The notes: generated from the sequence alone by a model not told the origin. DNA of 64,000 bases from Tubulanus polymorphus (GCF_964204645.1 NC_134032.1:10652275-10716274); one strand, 5' to 3'. Shown: positions 44,501 to 61,866, counted from the first letter of the stretch. Made by a program: numbers and translations.

Positions 44501-47500
44501 TTCAAATATCAAATTATGCCATACCGATAAGTTATGCAGAAATATCTGAATGGGATAGTAATTCAATTTCTATAACGCCCATTTCACTGTGAAACATTAT
44601 ATTCAACGGCAATCAATTTTCAATTGGTAATATTACCCCCAGCCTGATAGTGAATTAAGCAGCAGGCATACAATCCTACTTAACTACCATCCCCCGGCAG
44701 GGATTCGAACCTGATTGGCATCGAGACTGCAACCAACAACACGAGACCCTGGCACTTAAGCCCGAGTGCGCATGTACAGCTCATACGATGTCACTATGAG
44801 CCAATCAGAAGTCGAGTTTTATTTCAGCCCGGGTTTTTACATCTACAGTTTTGCCGTGAAATTTGCCTCAGCCATTAGACAACGAGCAAACTGATTGGTG
44901 GCGCAAGTTAATGGGCGGCAAACCTGCGCATCTACATACGTGCGCCCCGGTCTAGCGTGGCAAGTTTCTCTCCGTGGCCGAGTCTAGTATGCCATCAGTT
45001 TCGAATCCATGTCGATGAGGGATGCAAAACTACTCAGGTGAGCCGCAGAATGAAAAAAAAAGAACCAAAACGTACTTGTTACAGAAAACCCCTTGGCTTG
45101 AACTCGGGTCTTTGATCATATTCCCGGCGACGCACGCAATGGTGTTCAGATTGGTCCCACTCATTACAGAAGTTGCCAAACACGACATCATTTTCATGCT
45201 TCCTTTCATTGCACAATTCGGATCTTGCACTAATTGATGAACTGAAAACATTTCCGGTAATCAATTTATTTCAATCTATTCTTAAATTCCGTGGAAATGA
45301 ACAATAAAATGACGAATTCCAAGTTGTTAATGCTCTTTCTCAACAATGGGGAACCCGAAACGCCGGCTATCCCACCAGGCGCGACGTCAAAATTATTTCA
45401 TTTTCAATTAACTTTGAACTGGAATTTTAGACTCACTAACCCATATATCATCACAGCACCCACCAACCATACAATACTTTCATTCTTCTACTGATATATA
45501 TCGGTATAGGTTTCATTGATAATTGATACATTTTAAGAGAAAAGTTCATTCAGTTTTGATCGAAATATAGAAGAAAATCGAACGCGGAAGACCCACTATC
45601 TACTAGCGACACCTGTTGGATCCTCGCCTGCCATACGGCAAAAGGTTGAAAGCCTGTTTTGGTCGATGGCGAGTGACGTCACTAGTACAAATTCCGAGCG
45701 GTTCGAATCCCACAATACGCCAAAATCACTACGGCCGCTCTGAGCGCACATCGCATTTCAACGTTGCCGTTTAATAATTGTAAAATAACTAATAATAGTT
45801 TAAGTTTTATAAGGGTTAGAAGTACATTGTATTTACTGCTAGTGTATGTATATATCATGTACGGTTGCGAGAAATCCCTGCCCTAGTTAAACAGTAAGTC
45901 CACTAAATCTTTAAATTTTAAGTTGTTTAATGAAACTATTATTGTTTTAAATTGTTAAAACTGCAAACTATGGTTGTCGAAGATGCACCTTCTTCACATC
46001 CTTTGAAATCCTGGATAGCATCGCTGTCGGCAAAGACCTTCAGGTCTGTCTTCAACGGCACATCGCTTTGGAACAAGCGACTACTGTGTTATCAAATCTG
46101 AACTAGGTAAAAAAATGTTCCCCAAAAATAAAGACAAGTAAACGGATTAATTTAAGGTTTGAATGTTTTTGTTTATTTGTTGGTTCAAATCGAACCCTCG
46201 TCATCCTGATCTCCATAAATCTAAGAAAAGTATTCGCACACTTAAAACAATAAAATACGAGCAATAAGCAATAACATCAGACTGGAGTAAGTAACTTTAC
46301 TTAATTCACAGATACAATCCTACACAAAACAATAGCTATTCAGTGGCGGATCCACCCCTCTATTTTTACCGATGTAGCCGCAAATCTATGCGTTACTGAG
46401 TAAAAACCGAATGAAATCTTTCTATTAAGTAATGCTCAGAATGCACCTGCTTGCATCTATTTTTCCAAAAAATTTTTAGGAAGGGTCTTCGCGTTATCGG
46501 TGCTTGCTCTGGAATGGCTTACAGCCATCTGTTGTTGCTTTCATTTGCCCCCCCCCCTTCAAAATGCTGGATCCGCCCCTGAGTGCAGACAAAATGATCG
46601 ACAAAGACATACAGAACTCTAAAACAACAGTTAACAATTTAAGCAACGATAGACAAAACAGATAGCTGATTACTTTACAAACCTGTTGTCAGAACCTTAA
46701 TTATTTTTACATGATATACAGAGGACTGTTAACAATTCAACCAATGAAATTGCGATAGAGATACAGAACATACAGCTTTAACAGTAAACAATGCAACCAA
46801 TGAAATTGCGATAGAGATACAGAACATACAGCTTTAACAGTAAACCATGCAACCAATGAATTGCGATTAACTAAGACCTACGAGCAATTATCAAGTTTGA
46901 TAATTGCTCGTAGCTAAGACATACAGGACAAACAGGACTAACTTAATTGCGATAGACATACAGGACATACAGGATTAACAGTAGACAATTCAACCAACGA
47001 ATTGCGATTAACTAAGACATACAGGACTAAACCACAGGACATACAGGACTAACAGTAGACAATTCAACAACCAATGAATTGCGATTAACTAAGACATACA
47101 GGACATACAGGACTAACTTAATTGCGATAGACATACAGGACTAACAGTAAACAATGCAACCAATGAATTGCGATCGCGATCACAAAGACATACAGGACAA
47201 AACCACAGGACATACAGGACTAACAGTAGACAATTCATTAACCAATGAATTGCGATTATTTAAGAAATACAGGACTAACTTAATTGCGATAGACATACAG
47301 GACATACAGGATTAACAGTAGACAATTCAACCAACGAATTGCGATTAACTAAGACATACAGGACTAAACCACAGGACATACAGGACTAACAGTAGACAAT
47401 TCAACAACCAATGAATTGCGATTAACTAAGACATACAGGACATACAGGACTAACTTAATTGCGATAGACATACAGGACTAACAGTAAACAATGCAACCAA

Positions 47501-50500
47501 TGAATTGCGATCGCGATCACAAAGACATACAGGACAAACAGGAATAAACCACAGTAAATTGCGATAAAAAAGACATACAGGACTAACTGCAGTAAATATA
47601 TAGGGCCTTAGGAATGCAAAATTCATTCATTTTGTCATTTGTAAACATTCCACAACTTATTTCATTATGTCATTTCCAGTTTTCAAAGGGAATTTTCTTA
47701 ACTTCAGATGCCTCGAGGACATAAACATATAGAAAGATCTGTCCCAAAAAAATGTCAAGTGTCTTTCATAGTGCAATGGGCCCTGGTTTCCACGTTTATA
47801 TATCACATATAAAATTCTACAGAAACAATCAATGAATAAGTGAAAATTTACGAATAACAAACAAGACATTCAAGCAGTTGAGTAAGTTAAAATGGGACCA
47901 ATCTATATATATTATATATGGATTATACAATTTAATCAGGGACAGCCTTGAACCGAGGTTGATGTGTCCATACACTCTCTTCATACACTCTCTGAACATG
48001 CATGTATGTATACTGCTGCCAATTGATGATAAGTCAAGGATGTTGAAGTTCTAGACATGGTCAGAATCATCCAGAGACATCGGCACGCATCACAATAACT
48101 GATGATTTTGCAGTAACCTGTAACATAAAAAATCAAGCGGTAATCTATTCACAAAATATATTTTCCTGAAAGAAAAAACCTGAAATAGAGCACTATAAAC
48201 ACCAGTGCATATACATCGCTTCTTAACCTTATATATAATCGAGTAAATATATAGGTGACTAAGTGACGGTCATTATAGGCTTCTACGTTCACCATGGGAA
48301 ATGAAAATATTTCTAACGTCAGGGATTCATTCGAAACCCGATCAATAATATTCTATACAAACTATTTAGGAAATCGGGTCACAATGAAAACAAAACCACC
48401 TGATATGTTCAGGAGGAGCCTCATTGATTGGAGCACATTTCCAATGATACCATCTATGGCAATTATCACATTCAATTGAGAATGTGGACTTTTTCTTAGG
48501 ATTAGCATTGCAGTTTTTGTGGCAGACAGGGCAGGTTTCAGCAACTAACCGAGAAGGGGTTTTTTCAACTTTTGATGACAAAAGATTATCTAGTTTCAAT
48601 TTTGCTAGGTTTTGGAGGCCTGCATTTCCAGGTTGATCTATAAGAATTTCTAATTCTTTTTCAGAATTGGAATTATTGATTTCTGTAATAGGAGAACTGT
48701 TGAGATAATCATCTCTATTATTATAATCGATTACAATAGATTTTTTCTTATGATGATTATGTTCAATACGAATGTGCTTTTGAAGGAATGTTTCACTTGC
48801 ATATGAATTAATAACCCCATCTGCCCAACAAATAGCACATGAGATAGGTTTCAAAGATGAATGAGAAGTGGATATGTGCCTATCTAGTTCCCTGCGACAT
48901 GAACAAAGATATGGAGGATTTATTTTGTCTTTAATACAAAAGGAACAGACAATACTTTTTTCAAATAAAACAGACTTCGAGTCATTTTTAACAACTGGTA
49001 TTGACTTAATATCTTTTGGTTTGGTATCTTTTGATTTTTTTGGTAAGGATGATTTATTCTGACTTAAAATATCTGCTGAAAATTCGATATCATTGCCAGG
49101 ATCTGGATCAGTGGAGTCTATGGTTTCAATTTCTGATATTTTAGCTTTTTTACCTAGTTTGATAGCAGCATTTTCAACCATAGCAGAAAAGGATACACCT
49201 CTGTTAGCAGGTCTAATTATCTTTCGCCCTCCGTGTCTTGCATTCTCAGCATCTTTAGGCATTGTAACCTTAGGACAGTAAGGGTCTATCACTTCAAGTT
49301 CAGGAAGGTTTATGGCAACCTGATTGTCCTTGATTGGACCCTCAGCACGCCTATGAGCCATATTGTGAGGTTGTCGTTTGGCAGGTCGTCCGCTTATTAA
49401 CTTAATTCCACAGTGGCTTTCATTATGTAAAATACTTAGAATGTGCCCTTTCCGAGCAGCATTGATATCATTCGAGCTAGCAATGTGGGAATGATCTTTT
49501 AACTTATCAATGAGGGTAGATGAAACAGAAATATTTTGTCGAGTAAAATTGTAAGTTGGCAGAGGCTCCACAATGTGGAATTTATATGCATCAATTAAAG
49601 CCTTCGTTGTGGTTATATTGTTTTTTTGGGCAAAACAGGCAAAAAGATGTTTGCAAAAATATGGTTGTCCAATCATTATAAAAGCTTCACAAGTACATAT
49701 ACCTAGTTTCAAATTGATTAAATGGCAATTACCATCTACGTATGAAAGACAATTTTCAGGAACGATTGTAATAACGTAATTGAATAAGATACGACTGGAT
49801 ATTGAATCTAAATTTCCTATGTACCTTCGGCATTTTTTTGAAATGTCATATGAATGTTCCTCGGATATTGATACTTTATCGGGGAATCTTTCTTCTAAAA
49901 CATCAAGCTGATTGAATGTATATTGAGTATCACCATTGAAAAAATTATCATTATCTTCTAACCTATTTAAGTTCTTTCGTGAAGAACTCTTCACAACAAA
50001 CCAATTAGTTTCTTCATCATATTTTAAAATCTCATTATTCTGTAATAAATCAAAGGCTCTTTTGCAACACTTTTCTATCTTTTCAAGGTGACGTATATTC
50101 TTAACTCGTTGGTCAAGTTGCTTAAATTGGAGATTGTTCATATTTGTCGCTTTGATCTCATCATTAAAAACATTTTCAAACAGTAATCGTACAAAAGATG
50201 ATATCAGTTTATTTAGGTGTCCACTTAAGTAGACATCATCTATTTGTTTGAATTTGCGCTCAGTAATATTATCAGTTAATAGCAAAGGGTTATTTCTGTT
50301 AGATTGGTCTGACTGATAAATTGATTCAGCATTGAATGCATCAGACCAAATTTGGGAATTAAACCAATTCTTCTTTAGGTAATCAATAAATAATGTTTTT
50401 GTATCTTGCGACATAAGGTCTAAAGAAATATCATTCTCAATAAAACTAATAAATGAATTGGCTATATCAGTTCTAGAGGAAGCATCCCATGATCTCATAA

Positions 50501-53500
50501 TGCATTTGAAACCAGTTTCTAGAGGCTTGCAAAATAAGCGAAGTTCTTGATTTTCATTCATGAAGCGACGAATACACTGCAGGACATGAAAATTACATAG
50601 TACTGATTTAAGATTATTGTCAGATGCTCCTTGCTTTAGACTTGCATCTTTATCATGTTGTACAAAAGGACAAAATCTAGATGTTGATGAACATGGCTTG
50701 ATTCTGAAAAAACCATTGCCATCATTAAATATATAGAATTCAGATGGATGATTACATTTTTCGTCTTTACATGGTGTATTGGCTAGAACTAACTGGATGG
50801 TAGTTGCATGAGTAGCCCCCCCTTCATCACTACTAATTGATGCAGCAGCAATACGTCCTTCATTTTTGTTGTCTGCAAAAGTTACAAATGAAGTTTTGAA
50901 TTTCCACGAATTGAAATCATGTTTCACGTCAATACCAATGACAGATTGTCCAAAGTTGGATAAATGTTCCAGAGAACGAGGATCAGAGAGAATAATGTGA
51001 TAATTACGTTTGAGTGTGGCATCCCCTCGTTGAAATAAAAGGACAGATTCATAGTTACCCTCTAATAATTTTTCAGTATTTCTCCAATCAGAACTTAGAA
51101 TAGGTATTTCGTCTTGAGATTTCATATGTAATTTTATCGAAGATTTATCAATATATTTCAATCTATTTGAAATTTGATCTAGGGTATGGTCATGACCGGC
51201 GCCATCATTTACATTTGATACATGAAGGTTATTGTGAGCATTGGTGGCAGAAAGAACCTTCATTGCTGTGGCTTTCATCATGACTCTATTTTCATCCCAT
51301 CTATCTCTAGTAGATAAATTAGGTCGCTTTTTAATTTGTAAAGGAATATTGTCATGATATTGACCATTAAGTGGTTTGCTGAAGATTCTCCACTTGGATA
51401 AATCAGTACTAAATAATACAAGTTTTGTTGCCCAATAACACATAAAATGAGGGTGAATTAATTTTTTTGGCTCAAACTGCTGCCTTAACTTCACAGGACG
51501 ATCACGTTTATTCTTCAGCTTATAGTTGTAACAGTTGGAACAAAGTGTTTCACCATCAGCATTTTTCCTCCATTTGTTAGACATGGTAATGGAGCAATGA
51601 ATACATTGTTTATCATTTAAAACAACGTCAATTTGACATGAGGGACAATTAGTGATGTTACTGGACATATTCAACTTTGAAAGATAATATCCACATGATG
51701 ATTTACAAACTGAAGACTTTGACGAACATTTTATGAGCATTTCTGCAGCCACAAATTGAGAAGTATCCTCAACAATTGGCTCAATAAATTCAAATTTATT
51801 ATCTAATCTATGGGTTTGCCAATTCTTTTTTAATGTTAAGGAAGCTTTCATCGTTGTCTGGTTACCAACAAATGAAGGCCGCACATTCTTATGCAGACGA
51901 ACTGTTTTTGTAAAATCAAAAGTGAATCTATCGAAATAATTTTTTGTGTCAGCACCAGTCATTACTTCCCCATTTTCAACCCATTCATCACTAAGTGGAT
52001 TCTGGTTGTTGAGGTATTTCTTGATAGTGTCAATGGCTACCTGGTCATTTGTACCTTGGTCTGTACAATGAAAACTTTTATACTTCGTCTTACTGCCAGT
52101 TGAATGAAAAGCAACTTCAAGATAATGCTTTCCTCTCCTGATGCGATGGGAGATAGTAGTTTTAGAACCATTAATATGGGAAGTTAATGGTTCAGCTGAA
52201 TTTAGAGTTAATGAGGATTGAGGATTCAAAATTGAGGATGTAGATTCAGGTGTAGATTCATTATTCGAAATTGGTGTAGATTCAGGTGTAGATTTAATAG
52301 TCAAAATTGGTGCAGATTCACTATTCGAAATTGGTGTAGATTCATTAGTCAAAATTGGTGCAGATTCACTATTCGAAATTGGTGTTGATTCAGGTGTTGA
52401 TTCATTAGTCAAAATTGGTGCAGATTCACTATTCGAAATTGGTGTTGATTCATTAGTCAAAATTGCTGCAGATTCATAATTCGAAATTGGTGTAGATTCA
52501 AGTGTTGATTCATTATTCAAAATTGGTGTAGATTTAGATTTGGCTGTAGTTAAGACTGATTTGCTTTTTTTAGGGGCAATATAAGAGTCTGACATCTTTA
52601 ATTCAGAACTAGCTAGTGTATTATTTGACTCAGTTGATCGTTTATGTCTCTGTCTGCGAGATAATCGTGATATCTTAGAGAAAGTAGTACTATTAGCAGT
52701 AGGTTGAGATGACTTTGAGAAGAGTTGAGTAATATCAATTAGATGTTTCATAAGCCAATTAATCAATATCAATCTAACAAAATCAGAATAGTTAGAAATG
52801 TTCTTAAGATAAGATAATTCATTGGGAGATGAAAATACACTTGAAATATCCTTTTCATAATAGGTTGCAATGCAAGCACCAATTAATGTAGCAGGGCCAC
52901 AGACAGATGAACATGATTGGAGTGGGTAATAACTAGTACAATTATTACTACATACATGCACTGAATTTTCAGTAACAAAATGAGGATCATGGAGGTGGAT
53001 ATAAACAGGATCAGGGCAATTCAAACCTTTCAAAACAGATCTTAAATGATTTTTAAATTCCCTTGGACAATCCCATGCTAGTGTATCAGCATAACACAGT
53101 TTGTTACTTTTTGGGTAAAAAACTGCTAGTGCATAATGATTGGCAACAACATGTCCATAAGAATTTAGAAATACGAAATCGTTTTGGGTGCCAACATGCA
53201 GGAAAAAAATTAGTTTATCACAACTTATGAGTGGATTAGGACCGAATCTTTTATATAAATTTGAAACATATTTCTTAGCATCAAATGTAAGTGGCATCAT
53301 AAATGCATGAATATTACAGTACTGTTCATTTATCATAGATGCAAAAGCATTTAACACAGATCCTTCAAACCATTTTTGATTAGTCATCGTCTGAAGTTCT
53401 GATACAGATACGCTATTATTATTACCAACTGGAAATTGTTGAGAGGGTTTTAAGGAAAAGAGCATATTTGAAAATGCTTGAATCTGTTCCCAATCGACTG

Positions 53501-56500
53501 AATCAGTGGGGCTTAAAGGCTTACTATTTACCCAAAGATTCATGGCAAAAAGATCTTGTTGTTTGGTTTTAGCATAATGTAAGAAAAGAAACCTATTAAT
53601 CTGATCAATAGAATAGCAGCCTGTATCGAGTCTCACATGGATATTAATGGAAGGGTCACGGACAATCCTTGACTGCATCTGTGCTTTTATGTCCTCCAAC
53701 TGATTTTTGTGGGGCATAGTGGGGGCATCATCAGCCAAATGACATGAATTAGACATGTCACAAATTCTGAATGACGTGACCTTTGATGGCATAACAGGAG
53801 GAATTTTCAAAAACTGATAGTCATTGAGGCACATTTCTGTTGGATTGTAACTAAAATTTCTTCTACATACATGTTCATCATCAGAATCATTCTCATCACT
53901 ATCATCAATTATGATTGGTTCGATACCTCCACCACCTGTGATACTTAGCTGTTTTTTGTTTTCCATCCAGCTATCTTCCTGCATCTTTAATCTTTCTATC
54001 CTTTCTTTCGAACTATCTTCCTGCATCTTTTCTGCTTCCTCTATCGTTCCTTCCGAGAAATTGTCACAAGCCGCGTCCTTTCCTTCTTCCTCCATTGTCC
54101 GCCTGAAATACACATTATCAACTCACTTTTTTTAGACATATGAATAGATAGAGTATGAAATTACCCATATAGGCCTAACATAAAACATGGGTATCTCTGA
54201 GTCATTTGCATTAAGTCATTTAGATTTGTAGGTACTAAATTAATTGAATTATGTTGTACTTACATTTCAGTATGGTTTAAACTAACATGGTCTAGAAGAT
54301 CTTTCCAATTGGTGAATTCAACTCCGCAAAAACATGTCGAGTCAGCAGGATCCGTCTGTGGATGAATAACCTAATGTGGAAGAGCACATTAATCTGTTTT
54401 TGCTTCAACATCTAAGCAAAAATAACAAAAATGAACCCGCATCTCGCAGAAAGGGCATCAAACTTACATGTTCCACTGACTTCCTTTTTCTGTTAAATCT
54501 TTTAGTATTGTGACAACTTCTATTGTAGCATCCCTGAATATGAAAACAAAGCTTTACAGCATAAATCATACCAATACCAATGAATTTCTATAATTTCATT
54601 TCGAGAAACATATTACTCACGTTCTTAGTCTGATAAAAAGGAGTAAATAATTGAGGCTTTAAACAAATAGCAACACCAGCCACATCAATTTTAGTCATGT
54701 ACTGGAAAAAAAAGACAGATTTGTGCATGCACAGCCTTTAGGTAATTGTGAAATAAAAGTGACCAAACTAATATTAAATCATAAGTTCTTGAGATGATAT
54801 GTACCTGGTCGAATGTGAAAAAGGCTCTTTGATCTTCACAACAGAATTGTTTCCTTGTATGATGCGCAACGTCAAAACTGCTATACTGGATTGAAGGATA
54901 CAAAAAACTGTTAAAATATATCTAACTTTATAAAGATAAATCACGTACAAATCACTTAGGAAAACAACTTTACCACTATTGTTGAATCATCCCATGCTCT
55001 TGCTTGATCATCCTTCAATTTGTTTTTTGCTATCAGCTATCAATATGATTCATTAATTCAATGCAAGGATTTTGAATAAAGTGGTTTCGTATTCAAGTTA
55101 TAAAAACTAATTGCAAATCATTCATTTTCTAGGATATCAATGCTAAATGATTACCTTTCGTCGATGGACTGCTCTACTTCTTTGCATCTTTTCAATCTCA
55201 TATGGAAAGTATTGAGGGCACCTGATTAAGAATCATTCATTATTTCCAGTACAATCATAAAATTTATGTAGTTTGCATACCTGGTAATTGGATAAAATAA
55301 TGCAATTCTACGTACATTTCATCTTCATTTTTCAATAGCAGTAGTTCCATTATCCTGTTATTTATGAACTGATTTCCCTTACGGCTGGGGTGTAACAAGT
55401 CAGTCCTAGATCACAAAATTTAGAAAAAAACAAGTTAGTTTAAATCGCGAAAAAATGCACATAACCTACTGGGCTTATTAAAATTAAACGATTACTTACG
55501 GTGAAAGGAGATCTCTTGAGAAGTGAAAATCAACGAACTTTACACCAAGTGTAAAGCATTCGCGGTGCAGCATTTCATTGTAATGAAATATTTTTGTGTC
55601 AGCATCGAAACTTTAAAAAAGAAAGAAATTTAAAAATCATTACATCGATCATAAATATAGTACTTCAAGAAAAATCTATTCTTGATACTTACTCATCACA
55701 TCGAGGAAAAAGAGCTGGTACAATGATGGTCCCAGTACATTTATAGAGCAACAATCGAATTAATTCAACGTGTCTTCGCAGAACAATCTCAAGCGGGACA
55801 TCACGCGTCATATCATTTGTTCCAACATGGACGATTAGTTGTTCCACATTCAGCATCTTCACCTTTTTCAATTCTGTAATATACAACTAATCAGTAACCC
55901 AATGAAAATGAACAATATAAATCAGTACTGAACCGAGAAATTACCTTCCATCAATGTTTCAATGGTTCCTCCGGGGCACACGATCCTTGTCCATTCAAAT
56001 AAGCCTACACCATCTAGCCCAGCATACTTTAAAATGCTGTCTGCTACGAGACCAATATGCTACAAAAAAGATTATTTGTCAGTCTCAGGCCAATATCACA
56101 GGGAGGTGTGAGAGAGCACACTGGTTACTGTAAGACCCTACTACATGCAAAAGAAGTGACACATATATGTATATCAATGTGATAGAATTGATTGAAAAAA
56201 TTGTGCATAATAGTAGCTAGTGCCCAAAAATAGAACACAGTGTTATTGAAGTGAAAATTTCTAAAATCCTCTGAAGCGGTGCTTATTTGGTAGCTACATG
56301 GGTATTCTAATTGAATAAGCATAAAGATAAGCGTGCACACACAGTAGCCTATGCATAAACAAGGGCCAGTTTCACCTTCACCTAAAAGTCCTGCAGTGTG
56401 AAGACTAACTTGTTCACCTAAACCACCTCTACCAGGCTGTGGAAGGCCTAACATCAGGCACTAAATTAAAAGATTCCTCTAAATCAAATTATCTATAAAC

Positions 56501-59500
56501 ATCCTCTTAATTGCAGGCAGACTGATTCAGGGAGGGGTGCAGCCCAAAATAGGGCATACATATCAGTATCATATATAATTAAAAATCAAAAGGGCACCAG
56601 ATCATCAGAAAACATAATACCTATATTTTGGAAGTAGGCCTACAGAGAACATGTTTTGGAATATAAGCTTTTTAAAAATACTTGTTGATATTTTTAATTT
56701 TTCCTTTAAATTTCATTGCGACTTAAAAGTTTTAAGGGGTCTACACCCCTGTATACTCTCCTGATCTGCCCCTGAATTGCCACTTAACAAAATTTCTCAG
56801 CTTAATTGTTGGCTAACTAGCTCAGTGAAACTGGGACCAGACCTAATGCATACACCCTCAGTGGCCAGGGCCAGGATTAAACAGTTAGGCTACGTATATA
56901 AATAAAGGAATGAAAAGTACTTATCCTGAAATTGGTTAGGCTATCTATCTGCAACAAGAAATACATTTTCATTGACTCTGAATACAGGGAACTACCATTC
57001 TTCTGTTTCGAGGCCTTAAAATTTATTGTTTATTTTTTGTTGCTGGATTTGGAATGGTTGTTGGAATATTTAAGGCCTAATGTCTATTTATTAATTGATG
57101 AGACCTGTTTTTCTGGGATATTTTGCTTACTTTTTGGGGTACATACCTCATTTATGTCTTAACAGAATGCCAAAAATCGCGGACAACAACTGAATATCTG
57201 ATATATTTCCAGTTCTGTACCAATTAGATGGATTGGCAAAAAGACTCCTTAAGTCCAGTTTAATGAGAGAGAAAATCCTCCATTTTGTCAAATTTCTTGG
57301 ATTTGAACATTGTTACCATGCCTACGCCACCCTGATTTAGTTGTTGAGACCCCACAAGAAAAATAACTTCATTTCGTAGGCATGGTGACAATGTAAAAAT
57401 TCAAGAAATTTCACAAAATGGAGGATTTTCTCTCTCATTCAATTGGACTTAAGGAGTCTTTTTGCCAATCCATCTAATTGGTACAGAACTGGAAATATAT
57501 CGGATATTCAGTTGTTGTCCGCGATTTTTGGCATTCTGTTAAGACATAAATGAGGTATGTACCCCAAAAAGTAAGCAAAATATCCAAGAAAAACAGGTCT
57601 CATCAATTAATAAATAGACATTAGTAGGTGGTAACTGTGTACGGGCAACATAGGCCTATACCCAGTGGCATGGCAATGGCATGCCACTGGGTACCCACTA
57701 CTGCACTATAGTATACTGCCTACGGCTACTGCGACTGGTGGTTCGGTTGGCAGAAATTACTTGTTAACATGGGGGGGGGGGGGAGGGGGGAAGTAAGCGT
57801 GGATGAAGACAAATTAATTTAGCCGAGTAAGTAGCAAGCAAGTAAAGTAGTGGCAGTACAGTAGGCCTAGCGACAATGTGAGTGTGGTGGTAACGTGGCC
57901 GTGGTGGCAATAACAAGACTCCAAAACTGGCAAAAGCCAAAATTAAAAAGCCCTGCCGCCGCGCGGTCGCGACGCCTCGCCTGCACCACCGTGTACGATC
58001 CTCGCGGCGTTCACCAGTGTTACCCAGTGAGTTTTTTATAATCTTGCAATCTACCTCTTTTTTCAAACCAATATTCCCACCAACTGGTCCGGAGACAAGC
58101 TTAACACGTTCGGAAAACATGATTCACAATCTTTTAATCAACAGCCAGCAAGAATACACTTGACAGAAAATTCAAATTCAGCGGTTAACCGTTAAAAGTG
58201 AGTTGTTTAGCTGTGGGAGTAACAAAAAGGCGATCTTGATGACGTCACTAGCCATCGACCAAAACAGGCTTTCAACCTTTTGCTGCCATACGTGTAAAGA
58301 TCGAGTACCCATTATATAATTCATTATTCGAGTACATATCGATGCTTAATGAAAAAAATTATCTTTTGAATCTATCGATTCCAAAATGATTTCTCACGTG
58401 GATCGATCGCCCTGAATTGTTTTGTTCCCAATCCCAATCGAAATGTACTTACGTTGGGCCACATCGGGTAACATTTTACAATTGACGTCGATGAGCGGCG
58501 GTAGGCTAGGCGCAAATTCACTCTCAATTGTCAAATATGGACGGATTGTGGGTTGGGATAATTGCCGTAAGAGGCAGTAAGCGTGCTCGTTTGAGCAGAC
58601 AGTCCGGTATCTTCGAAACCATGACCATCAGTTTATTCCTAAAGAACAGTTATCATCGAATGGAAATTACAAATACAAATGATAATGATGATGCGACGAT
58701 GACGATAATGAAAATGCTAATAATGATAATAACAATAATAATAACGAATAAAACGATAAAGAATATTGATGATAATGATGACGATGATGATAATGTCACT
58801 TATGATGATACATCCTCCCCCGGCAGGGATTCGAACCTTGCCACGGTAAGAAACCCTGCCACACTAGACCGAGTGCGCAGCTACATGCGCAGCTTAGATG
58901 ATGTCATTGTTATGCAATGTTCAAAGTTGTCTGACAATAGAAAAACTCTTCTTGAAGTATTATATAGAAATTTTCCGGAATGCAGGAGGTCCTCAAGTGA
59001 GTGTAAATTCAGAATCATTATGTCAACTGTACAGATGGCGTATAGCCTTGGGAAATTTATAAAGGCTTCTTGCTAGATTCAGCTATGTGTATGTATATGA
59101 CATGATATGACGTTGTTTACTGAATCAGATTTTTTACTTGTACATAGCCTACTCATATGAACCGTCTCGGACTATTGAATCCTAGTCATAGTATAGAGAA
59201 ACGAGTGTATCTGCCTATCTTATCATGTTTGTACATAGTGCTATAAATTTTATCTGGTTTTGATATATACTATACATGTATTCTTCTTTGTTTTCCTCTT
59301 TATTGTAAAAAGCCAATAATGTCATTTGTATATTACGGTGCAATAAAGATTAAATTGAATTGAATTGAATTGAATTATTAGCCAATCACATATCCCGTTT
59401 TATTAAAGCCCGGGTTTCCCATTTACAGTTCTTCTGTGAAATGAAATTCACCTCAGCGATTATACAACGAGCAATCTGATTGGTGTCGCAGGTTTTCGCG

Positions 59501-61866
59501 CGGCAAAGCTGCGCATGTACCTGCGCACCCGGTCTAGTGTGGCAGGGGTTCGTGCCGTGGCTGAGTGTAGCGATGCCATCTGGTTCGAATCGCTGTCGAG
59601 GGAGGATGATAGGCCTATAGATCGATTAATAGTTATGTAATAATATTTTCCTCAGTGGGAAGTGATAAGATTACTTTAAACTTTCTGATCGTCTACAACA
59701 CGCCTGGTTACCTCCAAATAGCATCGCAGAAGGATTTCACGAGGCCGAAAGTTTCTTTTATAGCCGTCTGCATGTGTTGGCTACCCGCTGCAAACTTATT
59801 CGCTAACGGCACACCTTTTGCAATCGCGAGGGCTAAACCGGCGTTTAAGGCGTCCAATCCTGATTGGTTCGCATCATCGGCGCATTTCAGAACACGAGGC
59901 ACTCCACTCCACATACACAGGAAACGTTCCTCGTGCGCTTGAGCTCCTCCTAATGGCAAAAAATAGAACACGAATTGGTACAATAAAAACAAGTCGAACG
60001 AATGCGGATCATTTTTGAGATTTCATATTAGGTCAGCTCTTGATTGTCGCGTGGGAAGTCGTACCATTCTACCTGGTTATGGTGCATCCATGTGATTATG
60101 GATACACCACCGTGAAAACCGGGTTAAAGCAATTCATTTTGGCTCTATCGGGAATTTCAAAAATACGTGGTTTCAGGTCTTCTTTTTCAGATAATGAGAG
60201 TGATATAAAAAAAGCTTTACGGGTTCCAAATTTTAAACAAATTTTAAAGGGATGATATTTTTGCCTTAATAGATACACACGATTTCCACGCAGGCGAAAA
60301 TTTTCGAAAGATCTTCTATTACGATCAAAGCTTTTACCCGCGCAGAATCCCTGCAATGTCGATATAATGGTTGTTTCTATGTTCGTAGCGTTGAAATCAG
60401 CTGAACACAATCATCCACACGCCACTCCTTTTTTGATGTCATCTTCCAGGGTTCGTCTGTCAAAAAAGATTTTGCGATGCAATGACTTATTGTTATTCGT
60501 CAATCAAATTCTGTTATTCAAATTACTCACCCGGGGTCGAACACAGGTCTCGTGCGTAGAAAGCAAGCGTGCTAGCCAGTAGACCAAAAAGCCCCGTCCA
60601 CTCGGCCAGTGGTTATATACAGCTGTTCATGCGTAACACTGTGATCATTTTATCACAGATTCAAAAGAATTTAGCCCAAACACAAAAATGGTGTTCATTT
60701 CAAGAAGCTAAGCAGCTATTATCAGAATCATGGCTTGTCAATAAGCGACAAATAGAGTTCTGTATCTTTTTTCTTTTCATACGTTTAGTATCAGCATCAG
60801 TATCAGTATCAGTATCTTTTTTCATACGTTCATTATGTTTAGATACAGATACATCGAATACATTTCAAGCATCAATCAATGAGACCAGATTCTAATGCAT
60901 TGATATTCTTTGTTTATAATATACCTGTGGTCGACACAAAGTGCTTTGCGTAGTTGAGCAGAATCATCAGCATTTGCCGATACCTTCTTCAGGGTATCGA
61001 TCCAACCGCTCAACTTATTACCGATACAAGGTATCAAACTATCCATGATGCACATAGCTGGAATAGACGCATATAAACGTACATGTAATAACATGTCTGA
61101 CTTGAGGAAATTGGATCTAAATTTACGAATCATACCCAAATAAGCACGACAAAATGGCAGCACGAAATAACATAGATAGCGCGGTAAATAAAATAAAAAT
61201 AATTGTCTTGTCGCCCAAAAAAGACGTGAAAAAATGTTTTATTTCGTTGCCCTCAGATTCAGAACCCTGTCGGGAAGGATGAGGTAAACTAATACTGCTA
61301 ATGCTGCCATTTTACCCTTCCAGTGCGTCTATTTAAGTCAGCACCGAAAGGGTTTATGTTTTTCACGAATATTGCGAAAAACAGAAATTTCCTGAAACAT
61401 GTTCTACTATCGTTGGAACTAAAAACTAAAATGGCTCGGTTTCACCCACAGGGCATTTTATAGTTTCGACAAGATTGATGATTCAGTTATTCATGAATCC
61501 TATGTGCGAGCCGGAACCGAAAGCTACGTTTTTCTATATCTAAAGTATAATTCGGTTGGGCTAATCTATCACTTTTGTTTCTCTATTTACCTTGCATTGC
61601 TGGGCTTTGAGTCGTCATCGATTCATTTTCTAGCAAAATAAGATATCCTCACGAAGTTTAAAAAGCAGGAATTAAGGCATGTTCTGTGTCGTTTTGAAAC
61701 GGGAAATGATATCGCTGCAAATTCAGCTTAGCAAAAAGAGCGAAAACCGAATAACGGCCATGACTAACCGCATTCCATGCATTCATTCAACGATTCAAAT
61801 CTTACCTCGAGCGAACAAAACCACCAGAATAAAGACGTAAACTTTGAATGGCTCGTGAAACTTCAT
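41533..61866 (-). CDS. Secreted, probably GPI-anchored protein of four 6-Cys modules (~514 codons, one in-frame TGA); exons 61866-61806, 61629-61591, 61057-60925, 60456-60338, 59949-59712, 58610-58453, 45241-45076, 44465-44326, 44034-43812, 42751-42552, 41600-41533
   Basis: All introns are GT-AG with compatible phases (1,1,2,1,2,1,2,1,2,1). Signal peptide MKFHEPFKVYVFILVVLFAR; repeated C-x10-C..C..C-x6/8-C..C pattern; C-terminal small residues plus a hydrophobic tail (AAGGSTVMISLLIGVFVV*). In-frame TGA at 60411-60413. The acceptor at 58610 (ttcgaag) is weak. Family not recognised. Confidence 0.78.
43381..43641 (-). mobile_element. 5'-truncated retroposon with (ATCGTA)n tail and 6-bp TSD GGAAGA
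   Basis: GGAAGA at 43375-43380 and 43642-43647; AATAAA immediately precedes the microsatellite tail on the - strand. Confidence 0.7.
46715..47590 (+). repeat. Complex subterminal minisatellite within the MULE (gacatacagga / ctaacagtagacaattcaaccaatgaattgcga units) with a ~337-bp-period higher-order duplication
   Basis: The block starting at 46932 recurs almost exactly at 47269. Confidence 0.9.
48366..56059 (-). CDS. Spliced multidomain transposase of at least 2232 aa (SGNH hydrolase-C2H2-Ulp1-like protease-GATA ZnF-MULE DDE-SWIM-2xC2H2-PHD); exons 56059-55945, 55873-55693, 55610-55500, 55405-55316, 55221-55155, 55036-54974, 54885-54805, 54701-54621, 54533-54468, 54370-54264, 54102-48366; tentative first coding exon 56454-56410
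   Basis: Ten GT-AG introns of 71-161 bp give a stop-free 6699-nt frame. Motifs: ADS / PGG / HVGTND / DLLHP (SGNH); NHY / YADT / LQ..SVCG (C48); CIHC-x17-CSNC (GATA); IDVKH / HDKD / CNFH / TDNITE (MULE D-D-CxxH-E); CTC..CKH (SWIM); CPVC..CDNC..H..C..CFHC (PHD). Confidence 0.85.
52240..52535 (-). repeat. Coding tandem repeat encoding (PISNSESAPILTNEST)n linker
   Basis: In-frame repeated tgaatct(a/g)caccaattt units between the protease and GATA/transposase regions. Confidence 0.9.
57078..57624. mobile_element. Palindromic (foldback) MITE, ~545 bp with ~240-bp arms, nested in the MULE 5' region
   Basis: ctaatgtctatttattaattgatgagacc... is the reverse complement of ...ggtctcatcaattaataaatagacattag; the arms differ at few positions around a short central spacer. 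Confidence 0.9.
58909..59376 (+). mobile_element. 5'-truncated LINE (C-terminal end of ORF2, 3' UTR and (TTGAA)n tail) inserted into the MITE 58811-59608
   Basis: Peptide VMQCSKLSDNRKTLL..KFRIIMS..LGKFIKASC* resembles LINE ORF2 termini; AATAAA is followed by (ttgaa)n. The empty site tgtcattattag is seen in the MITE copy at ~20470 (- strand). Confidence 0.7.

Follow-up and report, generated by a model that had tools for sequence, protein, structure and literature searches.

SGNH-hydrolase exons spliced in frame onto a giant Rehavkus-like transposase in the nemertean Tubulanus polymorphus

A stretch of 64,000 nucleotides from the genome of Tubulanus polymorphus (GCF_964204645.1, NC_134032.1:10652275-10716274; here called the window, with positions counted from its first letter) carries a DNA transposon whose single gene joins the exons of an SGNH/GDSL hydrolase domain in frame to a giant transposase of the Mutator-like element (MULE) superfamily. 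This architecture is real and it is expressed. That the protein combines three active enzymes is not established because the transcript form seen cannot translate the block which contains the serine. On balance, we think that the element is a Rehavkus-type MULE and that its main product probably carries an SGNH remnant extending from block III to block V, i.e., a non-catalytic binding or structural module and not an esterase.

Gene structure and transcripts

The gene is on the minus strand and has 13 exons: two untranslated 5' exons, ten small exons (E1 to E10) and one exon of 5.7 kb (Table 1). An open reading frame (ORF) of 1915 codons occupies 48366-54113 of the minus strand. It is 100% identical to a Tubulanus polymorphus "uncharacterized protein" at NCBI and 99.9-100% identical to the stored NCBI proteins P0001 and P0005. 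The original prediction, drawn from the sequence alone, called the fusion hidden; in fact the NCBI annotation already models it under this name.

Contigs of four public sequencing runs were compared with positions 52600-58290. Run X4 shows twelve joints, all of them with CT..AC on the plus strand and hence GT..AG in the direction of the gene. Contigs of the DNA-like runs X1 and X2 cross the introns unspliced, with no joint at those places. From its joints we infer that X4 is an RNA run; the run type is not on record. In the contigs of run X5 (2015, possibly RNA) nothing of the element was found. The ten small exons had been predicted with GT-AG introns of 71-161 nt and a last junction at 54264/54102. 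All ten junctions are present in X4, none in X1 or X2. The NCBI models of the 2196-aa isoform X1, P0005 and P0002, have the same exons as the X4 joints. In-frame splicing of the SGNH exons to the transposase exon is confirmed by the X4 joints and the NCBI models, two lines of evidence which may share the same RNA data. E1 to E10 sum to 962 nt and leave a split codon (at/g). The predicted stop-free frame into the large exon likewise stands: from 56059 it reads through 321 + 1911 = 2232 codons, and the NCBI models agree. Transcription starts near the terminal inverted repeat (TIR) at the 5' end of the gene; the first exon reaches at least to 58197.

Identity of the SGNH domain

Block I of the domain reads ADS (Ser codon 56038-56036), block II PGG, block III GTND and block V DLLH. 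All four lie in E1 to E4 where they had been predicted, the serine codon included, and the catalytic Ser (I), Gly (II), Asn (III) and His (V) are all present in the exon translations. Exons were searched singly; for searches with the whole domain the stored NCBI proteins P0004 and P0005 were used. P0004, the 215-aa protein of the window locus, matches Pfam Lipase_GDSL_2 with 39.2 bits (cut-off 32.9, E=1.4e-9). The full-length isoform P0005, which is without blocks I and II, scores 28.6 bits and falls below the same cut-off of 32.9. When single exons are submitted to Pfam E2 alone matches, weakly. A hidden Markov model (HMM) built without the Tubulanus protein matches E1 to E4 colinearly (Table 1).

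A full HMMER scan of 1.84 billion representatives yielded 61 relatives of the domain. In those longer than the domain itself it is mostly located at or near the C-terminus of proteins of 300-600 aa. Two relatives were looked up and both are followed by an ORF2 with an APE endonuclease and a reverse transcriptase; hence these two are ORF1 proteins of long interspersed nuclear elements (LINEs). An alignment of 35 sequences (34 of them relatives) shows Ser12 and Asn62 as invariant and Gly34, His145 and Gly150 as nearly invariant. Against solved structures the family profile has its top match in the ZfL2-1 ORF1p esterase (4c1b, E=4e-36), followed by an SGNH hydrolase at 1e-16. The likeness to the ORF1p esterase of CR1/L2-type LINEs, proposed at the outset, is borne out by these matches and by the genomic position of the two relatives; among known proteins LINE ORF1p esterases come nearest to the domain. 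The domain belongs to the same SGNH subtype as the LINE ORF1p esterases of the CR1/L2/RTEX clades (ZfL2-1 ORF1p, PDB 4c1b, PMC3905857), yet here it is fused to a class II DDE transposase, is split by introns, has ADS instead of GDS in block I, and is probably truncated at translation.

In a structure search with a single sequence the OSK domain of Oskar (PF17182; PDB 5a4a) comes first with E=0.002, ahead of 4c1b with E=0.013. OSK has an SGNH-like fold, and a weak Pfam match to OSK exists as well. The catalytic residues, lost from OSK, are still encoded in the DNA of the Tubulanus exons. An AlphaFold model of P0004 calculated without an alignment had a pLDDT (predicted local distance difference test) score of 51. 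Of note, block III reads GTNN in most copies of the element, in the DNA contigs and in the NCBI full-length isoform; GTND in the window copy is a private or minority variant at 55814.

Which part of the SGNH domain is translated?

The original prediction envisaged a protein of about 2250 aa with three catalytic modules. It missed that E1 starts at an acceptor site without an ATG, that two more exons lie upstream, and that a TAG closes the SGNH frame. In the frame of E1 the last codon of the preceding exon, E-1, is TAG (56384-56382), directly ahead of E1 in the spliced form seen, and 56382/56059 is the sole E-1/E1 joint in the transcript contigs. The only ATG of E-1 (56454), at a distance of 73 nt from the donor, is in another frame than E1 and opens an upstream ORF of 46 codons. 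If E-1 were skipped the first exon would close the E1 frame with TAA. With the TAG ahead of E1 and the upstream ATG in the wrong frame, the E1 frame has its first ATG at 55951. A product beginning there contains neither the Ser nucleophile nor the Gly of block II. As there is no in-frame start before block I in the transcript form seen, the three-enzyme protein does not follow from the transcripts. Most likely, judging from the reading frames, the main product of 2196 aa lacks the serine nucleophile.

Several observations weigh against such a truncated product. With an AG that lies 16 nt into E1 as acceptor (exon start at 56043), ATG 56454 would come into frame and the domain would be complete. 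NCBI model P0010, on another copy of the element, takes exactly this acceptor; none of the assembled X4 contigs shows it. The splice evidence is at the level of assembled contigs, so a minor complete isoform is possible. In an older copy, about 90% identical (L041, G000:C3:14584864-14588468, about 1530-2080), AAG replaces TAG and E-1 is 4 nt shorter, and the ATG reads into block I. This points to an ancestral gene that encoded the domain in full and to a shift of the start in the subfamily which is now amplifying. In other respects L041 is degenerate: E5 and E9 contain stops. Further, every young copy has an open E1 in which the Ser, Gly and Asn motifs are intact. This is unexpected if E1 has long been untranslated; the caveat is that decay would not yet be visible in so young a family. 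Finally, a partial SGNH fold without its central first strand may be unable to fold, and both AlphaFold models, that of P0004 and one of the transposase core discussed below, are poor (pLDDT 50-51) and give no fold-level support.

These observations bring up the possibility that a complete and competent SGNH esterase is located at the N-terminus of the transposase, i.e., that one protein has esterase, cysteine protease and DDE activities. Translation would use ATG 56454 together with acceptor 56043, or another start, and by analogy the esterase would aid transposition as proposed for LINE ORF1p, through an interaction with lipids or membranes. All catalytic positions are kept, Ser, Gly, Asn and the Asp/His of DLLH, acceptor 56043 keeps the frame, and E1 to E4 compared with two older copies have ratios of nonsynonymous to synonymous substitutions (dN/dS) of 0.19 (p=0.0017) and 0.47 (p=0.06), values which are based on small counts with a synonymous bias. 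Yet the only E-1/E1 joint seen ends the frame, the NCBI full-length isoform begins after block II, most copies have GTNN and not GTND in block III, and the distant relatives from assembly ERZ25767047 described below have lost the catalytic His/Asp and revealed no exon for blocks I and II. We consider a complete esterase possible but rather unlikely. The SGNH remnant of blocks III to V is the reading we prefer: in the transcript form seen translation would begin at ATG 55951, the complete domain would come from minor isoforms only, and the remnant may act non-catalytically, similar to the catalytically dead OSK domain.

Two peculiarities of the window copy concern the same region. A host exon outside the element (58464-58453, minus strand; ATG TGG CCC AAC followed by the donor GTAAGT) is joined to E1 in the NCBI model P0004, a further possible route to a complete domain. 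The resulting chimera reads MWPN-HIGLVADS; its 215 aa end early via an alternative acceptor in E7, and it would therefore represent an SGNH protein on its own. At 56058, in the first codon of E1, the window copy has a private or minority variant which specifies His; the other 21 aligned copies have a G at this position (Arg in young copies).

Table 1. Features of the transposon and its gene in the window
Feature	Position	Strand	Remarks
Target-site duplication, left copy	45629..45637	.	TGCCATACG; identical 9-mer immediately outside both TIRs
TIR at the 3' end of the gene	45638..45681	.	44 nt, 98% complementary to 58240-58283; same terminus bounds other copies
Subterminal minisatellites, stop codon to 3' TIR	46731..47511	.	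Tandem Repeats Finder: 56-bp unit x2.5; 166-171-bp unit x3.2-3.5
Large last exon, multi-domain transposase	48366..54102	-	1911 codons and stop; 5' splice boundary from X4 joint
C-terminal PHD finger	48381..48533	-	Pfam PF00628, 24.2 bits, cut-off 24
SWIM-like zinc finger CxC...CxH	49647..49697	-	Cys/His invariant in 9 homologues; Pfam SWIM weak in 4/9
MULE-type DDE core	50250..50936	-	first D in GIDVKHD, second D in QHDKD, CNFH motif, E in NITERK
GATA-like zinc finger CX2C-X17-CX2C	51531..51605	-	four Cys invariant
Coding minisatellite, ESTPISN-type Ser/Thr/Pro repeats	52249..52534	-	24/48/108-nt tandem units; linker between ULP and GATA regions
ULP/C48-like cysteine protease (W, H, D, Q, C motifs)	52893..53378	-	profile of 8 homologues
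E5-E10, linker	54264..55221	-	GT-AG joints in X4; NCBI models; E10 with C2H2-like motif
E10	54370-54264	-	X4 joints and GT/AG check
E9	54533-54468	-	X4 joints and GT/AG check
E8	54701-54621	-	X4 joints and GT/AG check
E7	54885-54805	-	X4 joints and GT/AG check
E6	55036-54974	-	X4 joints and GT/AG check
E5	55221-55155	-	X4 joints and GT/AG check
E1-E4, SGNH domain	55316..56059	-	
E4 (block V)	55405-55316	-	X4 joints and GT/AG check; independent HMM positions 147-166, E=0.3
E3 (mid-domain)	55610-55500	-	X4 joints and GT/AG check; independent HMM positions 110-139, E=0.0015
E2 (block III)	55873-55693	-	X4 joints and GT/AG check; independent HMM positions 47-107, E=6e-9
E1 (blocks I and II)	56059-55945	-	X4 joints and GT/AG check; starts at acceptor site, no ATG; independent HMM positions 10-45, E=0.011
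First in-frame ATG of the transcript form seen	55949..55951	-	after block II; NCBI isoform X1 (P0005) begins MEELKK
5' exon E-1	56382..56460	-	X4 joints 56059/56382 and 56460/56921; ATG 56454-56452, TAG 56384-56382
First 5' exon, untranslated	56921..58197	-	interrupted by foldback in window copy; X4 contig reaches 58197, skipping 57078-57621
Foldback insertion (like a miniature inverted-repeat transposable element)	57078..57621	.	250-nt inverted arms, 96% complementary; not part of the family
TIR at the 5' end of the gene	58240..58283	.	partner of 45638-45681
Target-site duplication, right copy	58284..58292	.	same 9-mer as left; adjoins TIR at the 5' end of the gene

The mobile element and its copies

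The cut-and-paste carrier that had been predicted is evident from its 44-nt TIRs and a 9-bp target-site duplication (TSD). The element, whose 5' two-thirds are the region of the original prediction, extends from 45638 to 58283, which is 12.6 kb in the window and about 12.1 kb without a foldback insertion that is private to this copy. The foldback is located in the 5' untranslated exon and is missing from the other copies. Its contig depth is about 30-45 times that of the element, which means that it belongs to a very abundant family. Just outside the element a pair of 56-nt inverted repeats (58840-58895 and 59506-59561, 91% complementary, 610 nt apart) may be another small TIR element.

In the 268-Mb assembly there are about 30 copies of the 5' end, about 22 of the SGNH region and about 21 of the transposase core. 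They are 95-100% identical, most of them 98-100%. Both ends were checked in five more copies. The 9-bp TSD is perfect in four of them and differs in sequence from copy to copy; the 9-bp repeat of the fifth is offset by one base. Several copies have internal deletions as is typical of active DNA transposons. The element is a young, autonomous, recently active DNA transposon family which seemingly is still mobile. One of the deletion derivatives (L001/L009, G000:C4:12475797-12484031) lacks the equivalent of window positions 54517-56325. E1 to E8 and part of E9 are gone, and the transposase exon is kept at 98% identity.

Two further explanations have to be considered in view of the copies. One regards the SGNH exons as a non-functional fragment of a LINE ORF1 or a host gene, joined to the transposase by incidental or read-through splicing. 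Tubulanus has about 90 intronless SGNH ORFs of the LINE type, and the window copy is also chimeric with the host exon MWPN (58464-58453). Against this, the exons are enclosed by the TIRs and recur at different sites in about 22 copies; GT-AG introns divide them, in contrast to the intronless LINE ORFs; the identity of the exons to six LINE-type ORFs of the same genome is 21-26%; the frame runs unbroken into the transposase; and distant relatives share the arrangement, partly in one ORF. We regard an incidental fragment as very improbable. The second explanation is a domesticated transposase gene, co-opted by the host and no longer a mobile element. In its favour are the length and intactness of the ORF, the presence of introns, the expression and the gene model at NCBI. 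Against it stand at least 20 copies that are 95-100% identical, have intact TIRs and lie at different sites with differing 9-bp TSDs, as well as derivatives that carry internal deletions; we give it hardly any credence.

The modules of the transposase

The order of the modules in the reading frame is SGNH, a linker with a C2H2-like motif, the ULP/C48-like protease, Ser/Thr/Pro repeats, the GATA-like finger, the DDE core with its CxxH motif, the SWIM finger, two C2H2-like fingers and the PHD finger. Sequence comparisons back every one of the ULP/C48, GATA-like, MULE-type DDE, SWIM and PHD modules, in most cases at profile level only. The matches that had been expected came out unevenly: SGNH and PHD exceed the Pfam cut-offs, GATA stays below, C48 and MULE are recognized by profile comparison, and SWIM is weak. 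When the large ORF was run against Pfam as a single protein neither C48 nor MULE (PF10551, E<=1) matched.

The C...H....H motif of E10 is present in the consensus of the homologue alignment. The profile of the ULP region, built from eight homologues, matches yeast Ulp1 (1euv) with E=1.7e-5 and then SENP1, SENP2 and SENP5. The W, H, D, Q and C of the protease are invariant among the homologues; H, D, Q and C are the catalytic residues. In relatives from the ENA assembly ERZ25767047 Pro-rich repeats are located upstream of ULP, between the SGNH remnant and the C2H2-like motif. The GATA-like finger scores 17.7 bits in Pfam here, below the cut-off, and 26.1 bits in the Patella homologue.

The D, D and E of the DDE core are invariant in nine homologues. 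Comparing the core profile of these nine with seven canonical MULE ORFs of the same genome by hhalign gave P=2.8e-5 with both D and the CxxH aligned; two controls were at P=0.35-0.4. ZSWIM1-3_RNaseH-like (PF21056) matches weakly in six of the nine homologues (best E=0.0095). The top ESM Atlas match of the core scores 0.96 with 185 shared features, and the ten best named matches all belong to MULE, ZSWIM1-3 RNaseH-like or SWIM families or have MULE transposase in their name. A PDB search with the core profile found no match. A word-based homologue search with the same profile found close family members only and no canonical MULE. None of the 56 canonical MULE matches from a genome-wide PF10551 search is a copy of this element. 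An AlphaFold model of the core from nine sequences has a pLDDT of about 50.

If the modules act as their relatives do, the DDE core would cut and paste the element, the zinc fingers would bind its termini and subterminal repeats, the PHD finger would read chromatin, and the ULP module would act on SUMO-like conjugates or process the protein itself.

Classification

Rehavkus is a Repbase group of the MULE superfamily (Kapitonov and Jurka, 2008, as described in PMC6446971). The group is characterized by TIRs and a 9-bp TSD, by one ORF that includes a PHD finger, and by a minisatellite located before the 3' TIR; it has been placed beside or within the MULEs, and in a 2019 survey was present in arthropods and annelids only (PMC6446971). 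The Tubulanus element has the 9-bp TSD, a TIR length of 44 nt (range 26-400 bp), the minisatellite before the 3' TIR and the PHD finger. It fits the Rehavkus branch of the MULE superfamily, a likeness drawn from the published description of the group. It differs in its host phylum, Nemertea as opposed to Arthropoda and Annelida in the survey, and in that the published descriptions searched mention no SGNH or ULP domain.

The designation as a Mutator element holds at the level of the superfamily; within it the Rehavkus branch is indicated rather than canonical MuDR, and the Pfam MULE model is silent on the protein. With canonical MULE/MuDR (PF10551) it shares the 9-bp TSD, a SWIM finger at the C-terminus and a DDE core in which CxxH follows the second D. 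Unlike them, it has a Cys-rich insertion between the first and the second D, is 2-4 times longer and possesses extra enzymatic domains. A ULP1-like (C48-like) protease is also carried by plant MULEs of the KI-MULE/Kaonashi type, in a different arrangement. We know of no SGNH or PHD module in these plant elements.

Relatives elsewhere and the origin of the fusion

Homologous giant proteins with a core identity of 34-43% exist in the limpet Patella caerulea, the sea spider Nymphon striatum, and in ENA and JGI assemblies. Four elements of the ENA assembly ERZ25767047 have an upstream exon for block III (IIHVGLNDL). Behind it comes a segment with homology to the C-terminal half of SGNH, and in P0016 and P0019 the transposase shares one uninterrupted ORF with this segment. 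The profile of the segment compared by hhalign with LINE-type SGNH domains gave P=1.2e-6, with controls at 0.036 and 0.63. In the ERZ consensus the Asp and His positions of block V are replaced and only P0019 keeps the His. No exon for block I or II was found upstream of the four elements. A literal ADSILK in L014 was considered as block I; it lies in an AT-rich intron after block III and was treated as a chance occurrence. To judge from the alignments, the degenerate SGNH segment of the ERZ elements fits a conserved non-catalytic remnant.

Three of the four ERZ25767047 loci have a divergent gene with NADAR matches (323-371 aa) 7-10 kb upstream of the transposase (L013:1-91, L016:1-716 and L017:2218-3192, minus strand). 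For two of these three, Lipase_GDSL_2 matches are on record and the third matches the LINE-type SGNH profile. This divergent NADAR gene may be a second gene of the ERZ elements.

The 10 kb upstream of each of the two Patella loci and of the Nymphon locus yielded no SGNH exon, and neither did the short contig L018 (P0014), where about 2.2 kb upstream of the transposase gene are covered. In a midpoint-rooted tree of the core the ERZ clade branches as sister to everything else, and Tubulanus falls together with Patella (support 87/90); the root is insecure. On this distribution the fusion would be either old with later losses or have arisen twice. A recent capture of the SGNH domain from one of the six best LINE-type ORFs of Tubulanus was rejected as these are only 21-26% identical. 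The genome (G000) is rich in both possible parents of the fusion: it contains 56 canonical MULE-domain matches and about 90 intronless SGNH ORFs of the LINE type.

A more far-reaching proposal is that the fusion is old and functional in a Rehavkus-like clade spanning several animal phyla, that its class II transposase adopted an esterase module otherwise known from ORF1 proteins of LINEs, and that in Tubulanus a minor isoform or an alternative start supplies an active esterase needed for efficient transposition. We hold this to be doubtful. If true, the esterase would act, e.g., by interacting with membranes or lipids or by deacylating host factors, and the protein would be the first DNA transposase with esterase, protease and DDE in one polypeptide.

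Significance

SGNH/GDSL esterases have been described as accessory modules of LINE ORF1p, some long terminal repeat elements, Penelope-like elements and Terminons, and their role in retroelements is still unclear (PMC3905857, PMC5408684, PMC6431247). In the full-text literature which we searched (Rehavkus; SGNH, GDSL or esterase together with transposase), Repbase being outside this scope, no SGNH domain in a DNA transposase was described. Recruitment of the same SGNH module by a cut-and-paste element implies that its benefit is not tied to reverse transcription or to the formation of ribonucleoprotein particles. At about 2200 aa the protein is one of the largest transposases encoded by a single gene, and the range of Rehavkus-like elements is extended to Nemertea and Mollusca. 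Since the family is young and expressed, and since nature has provided a deletion copy without SGNH, the function of the module is testable by a transposition assay.

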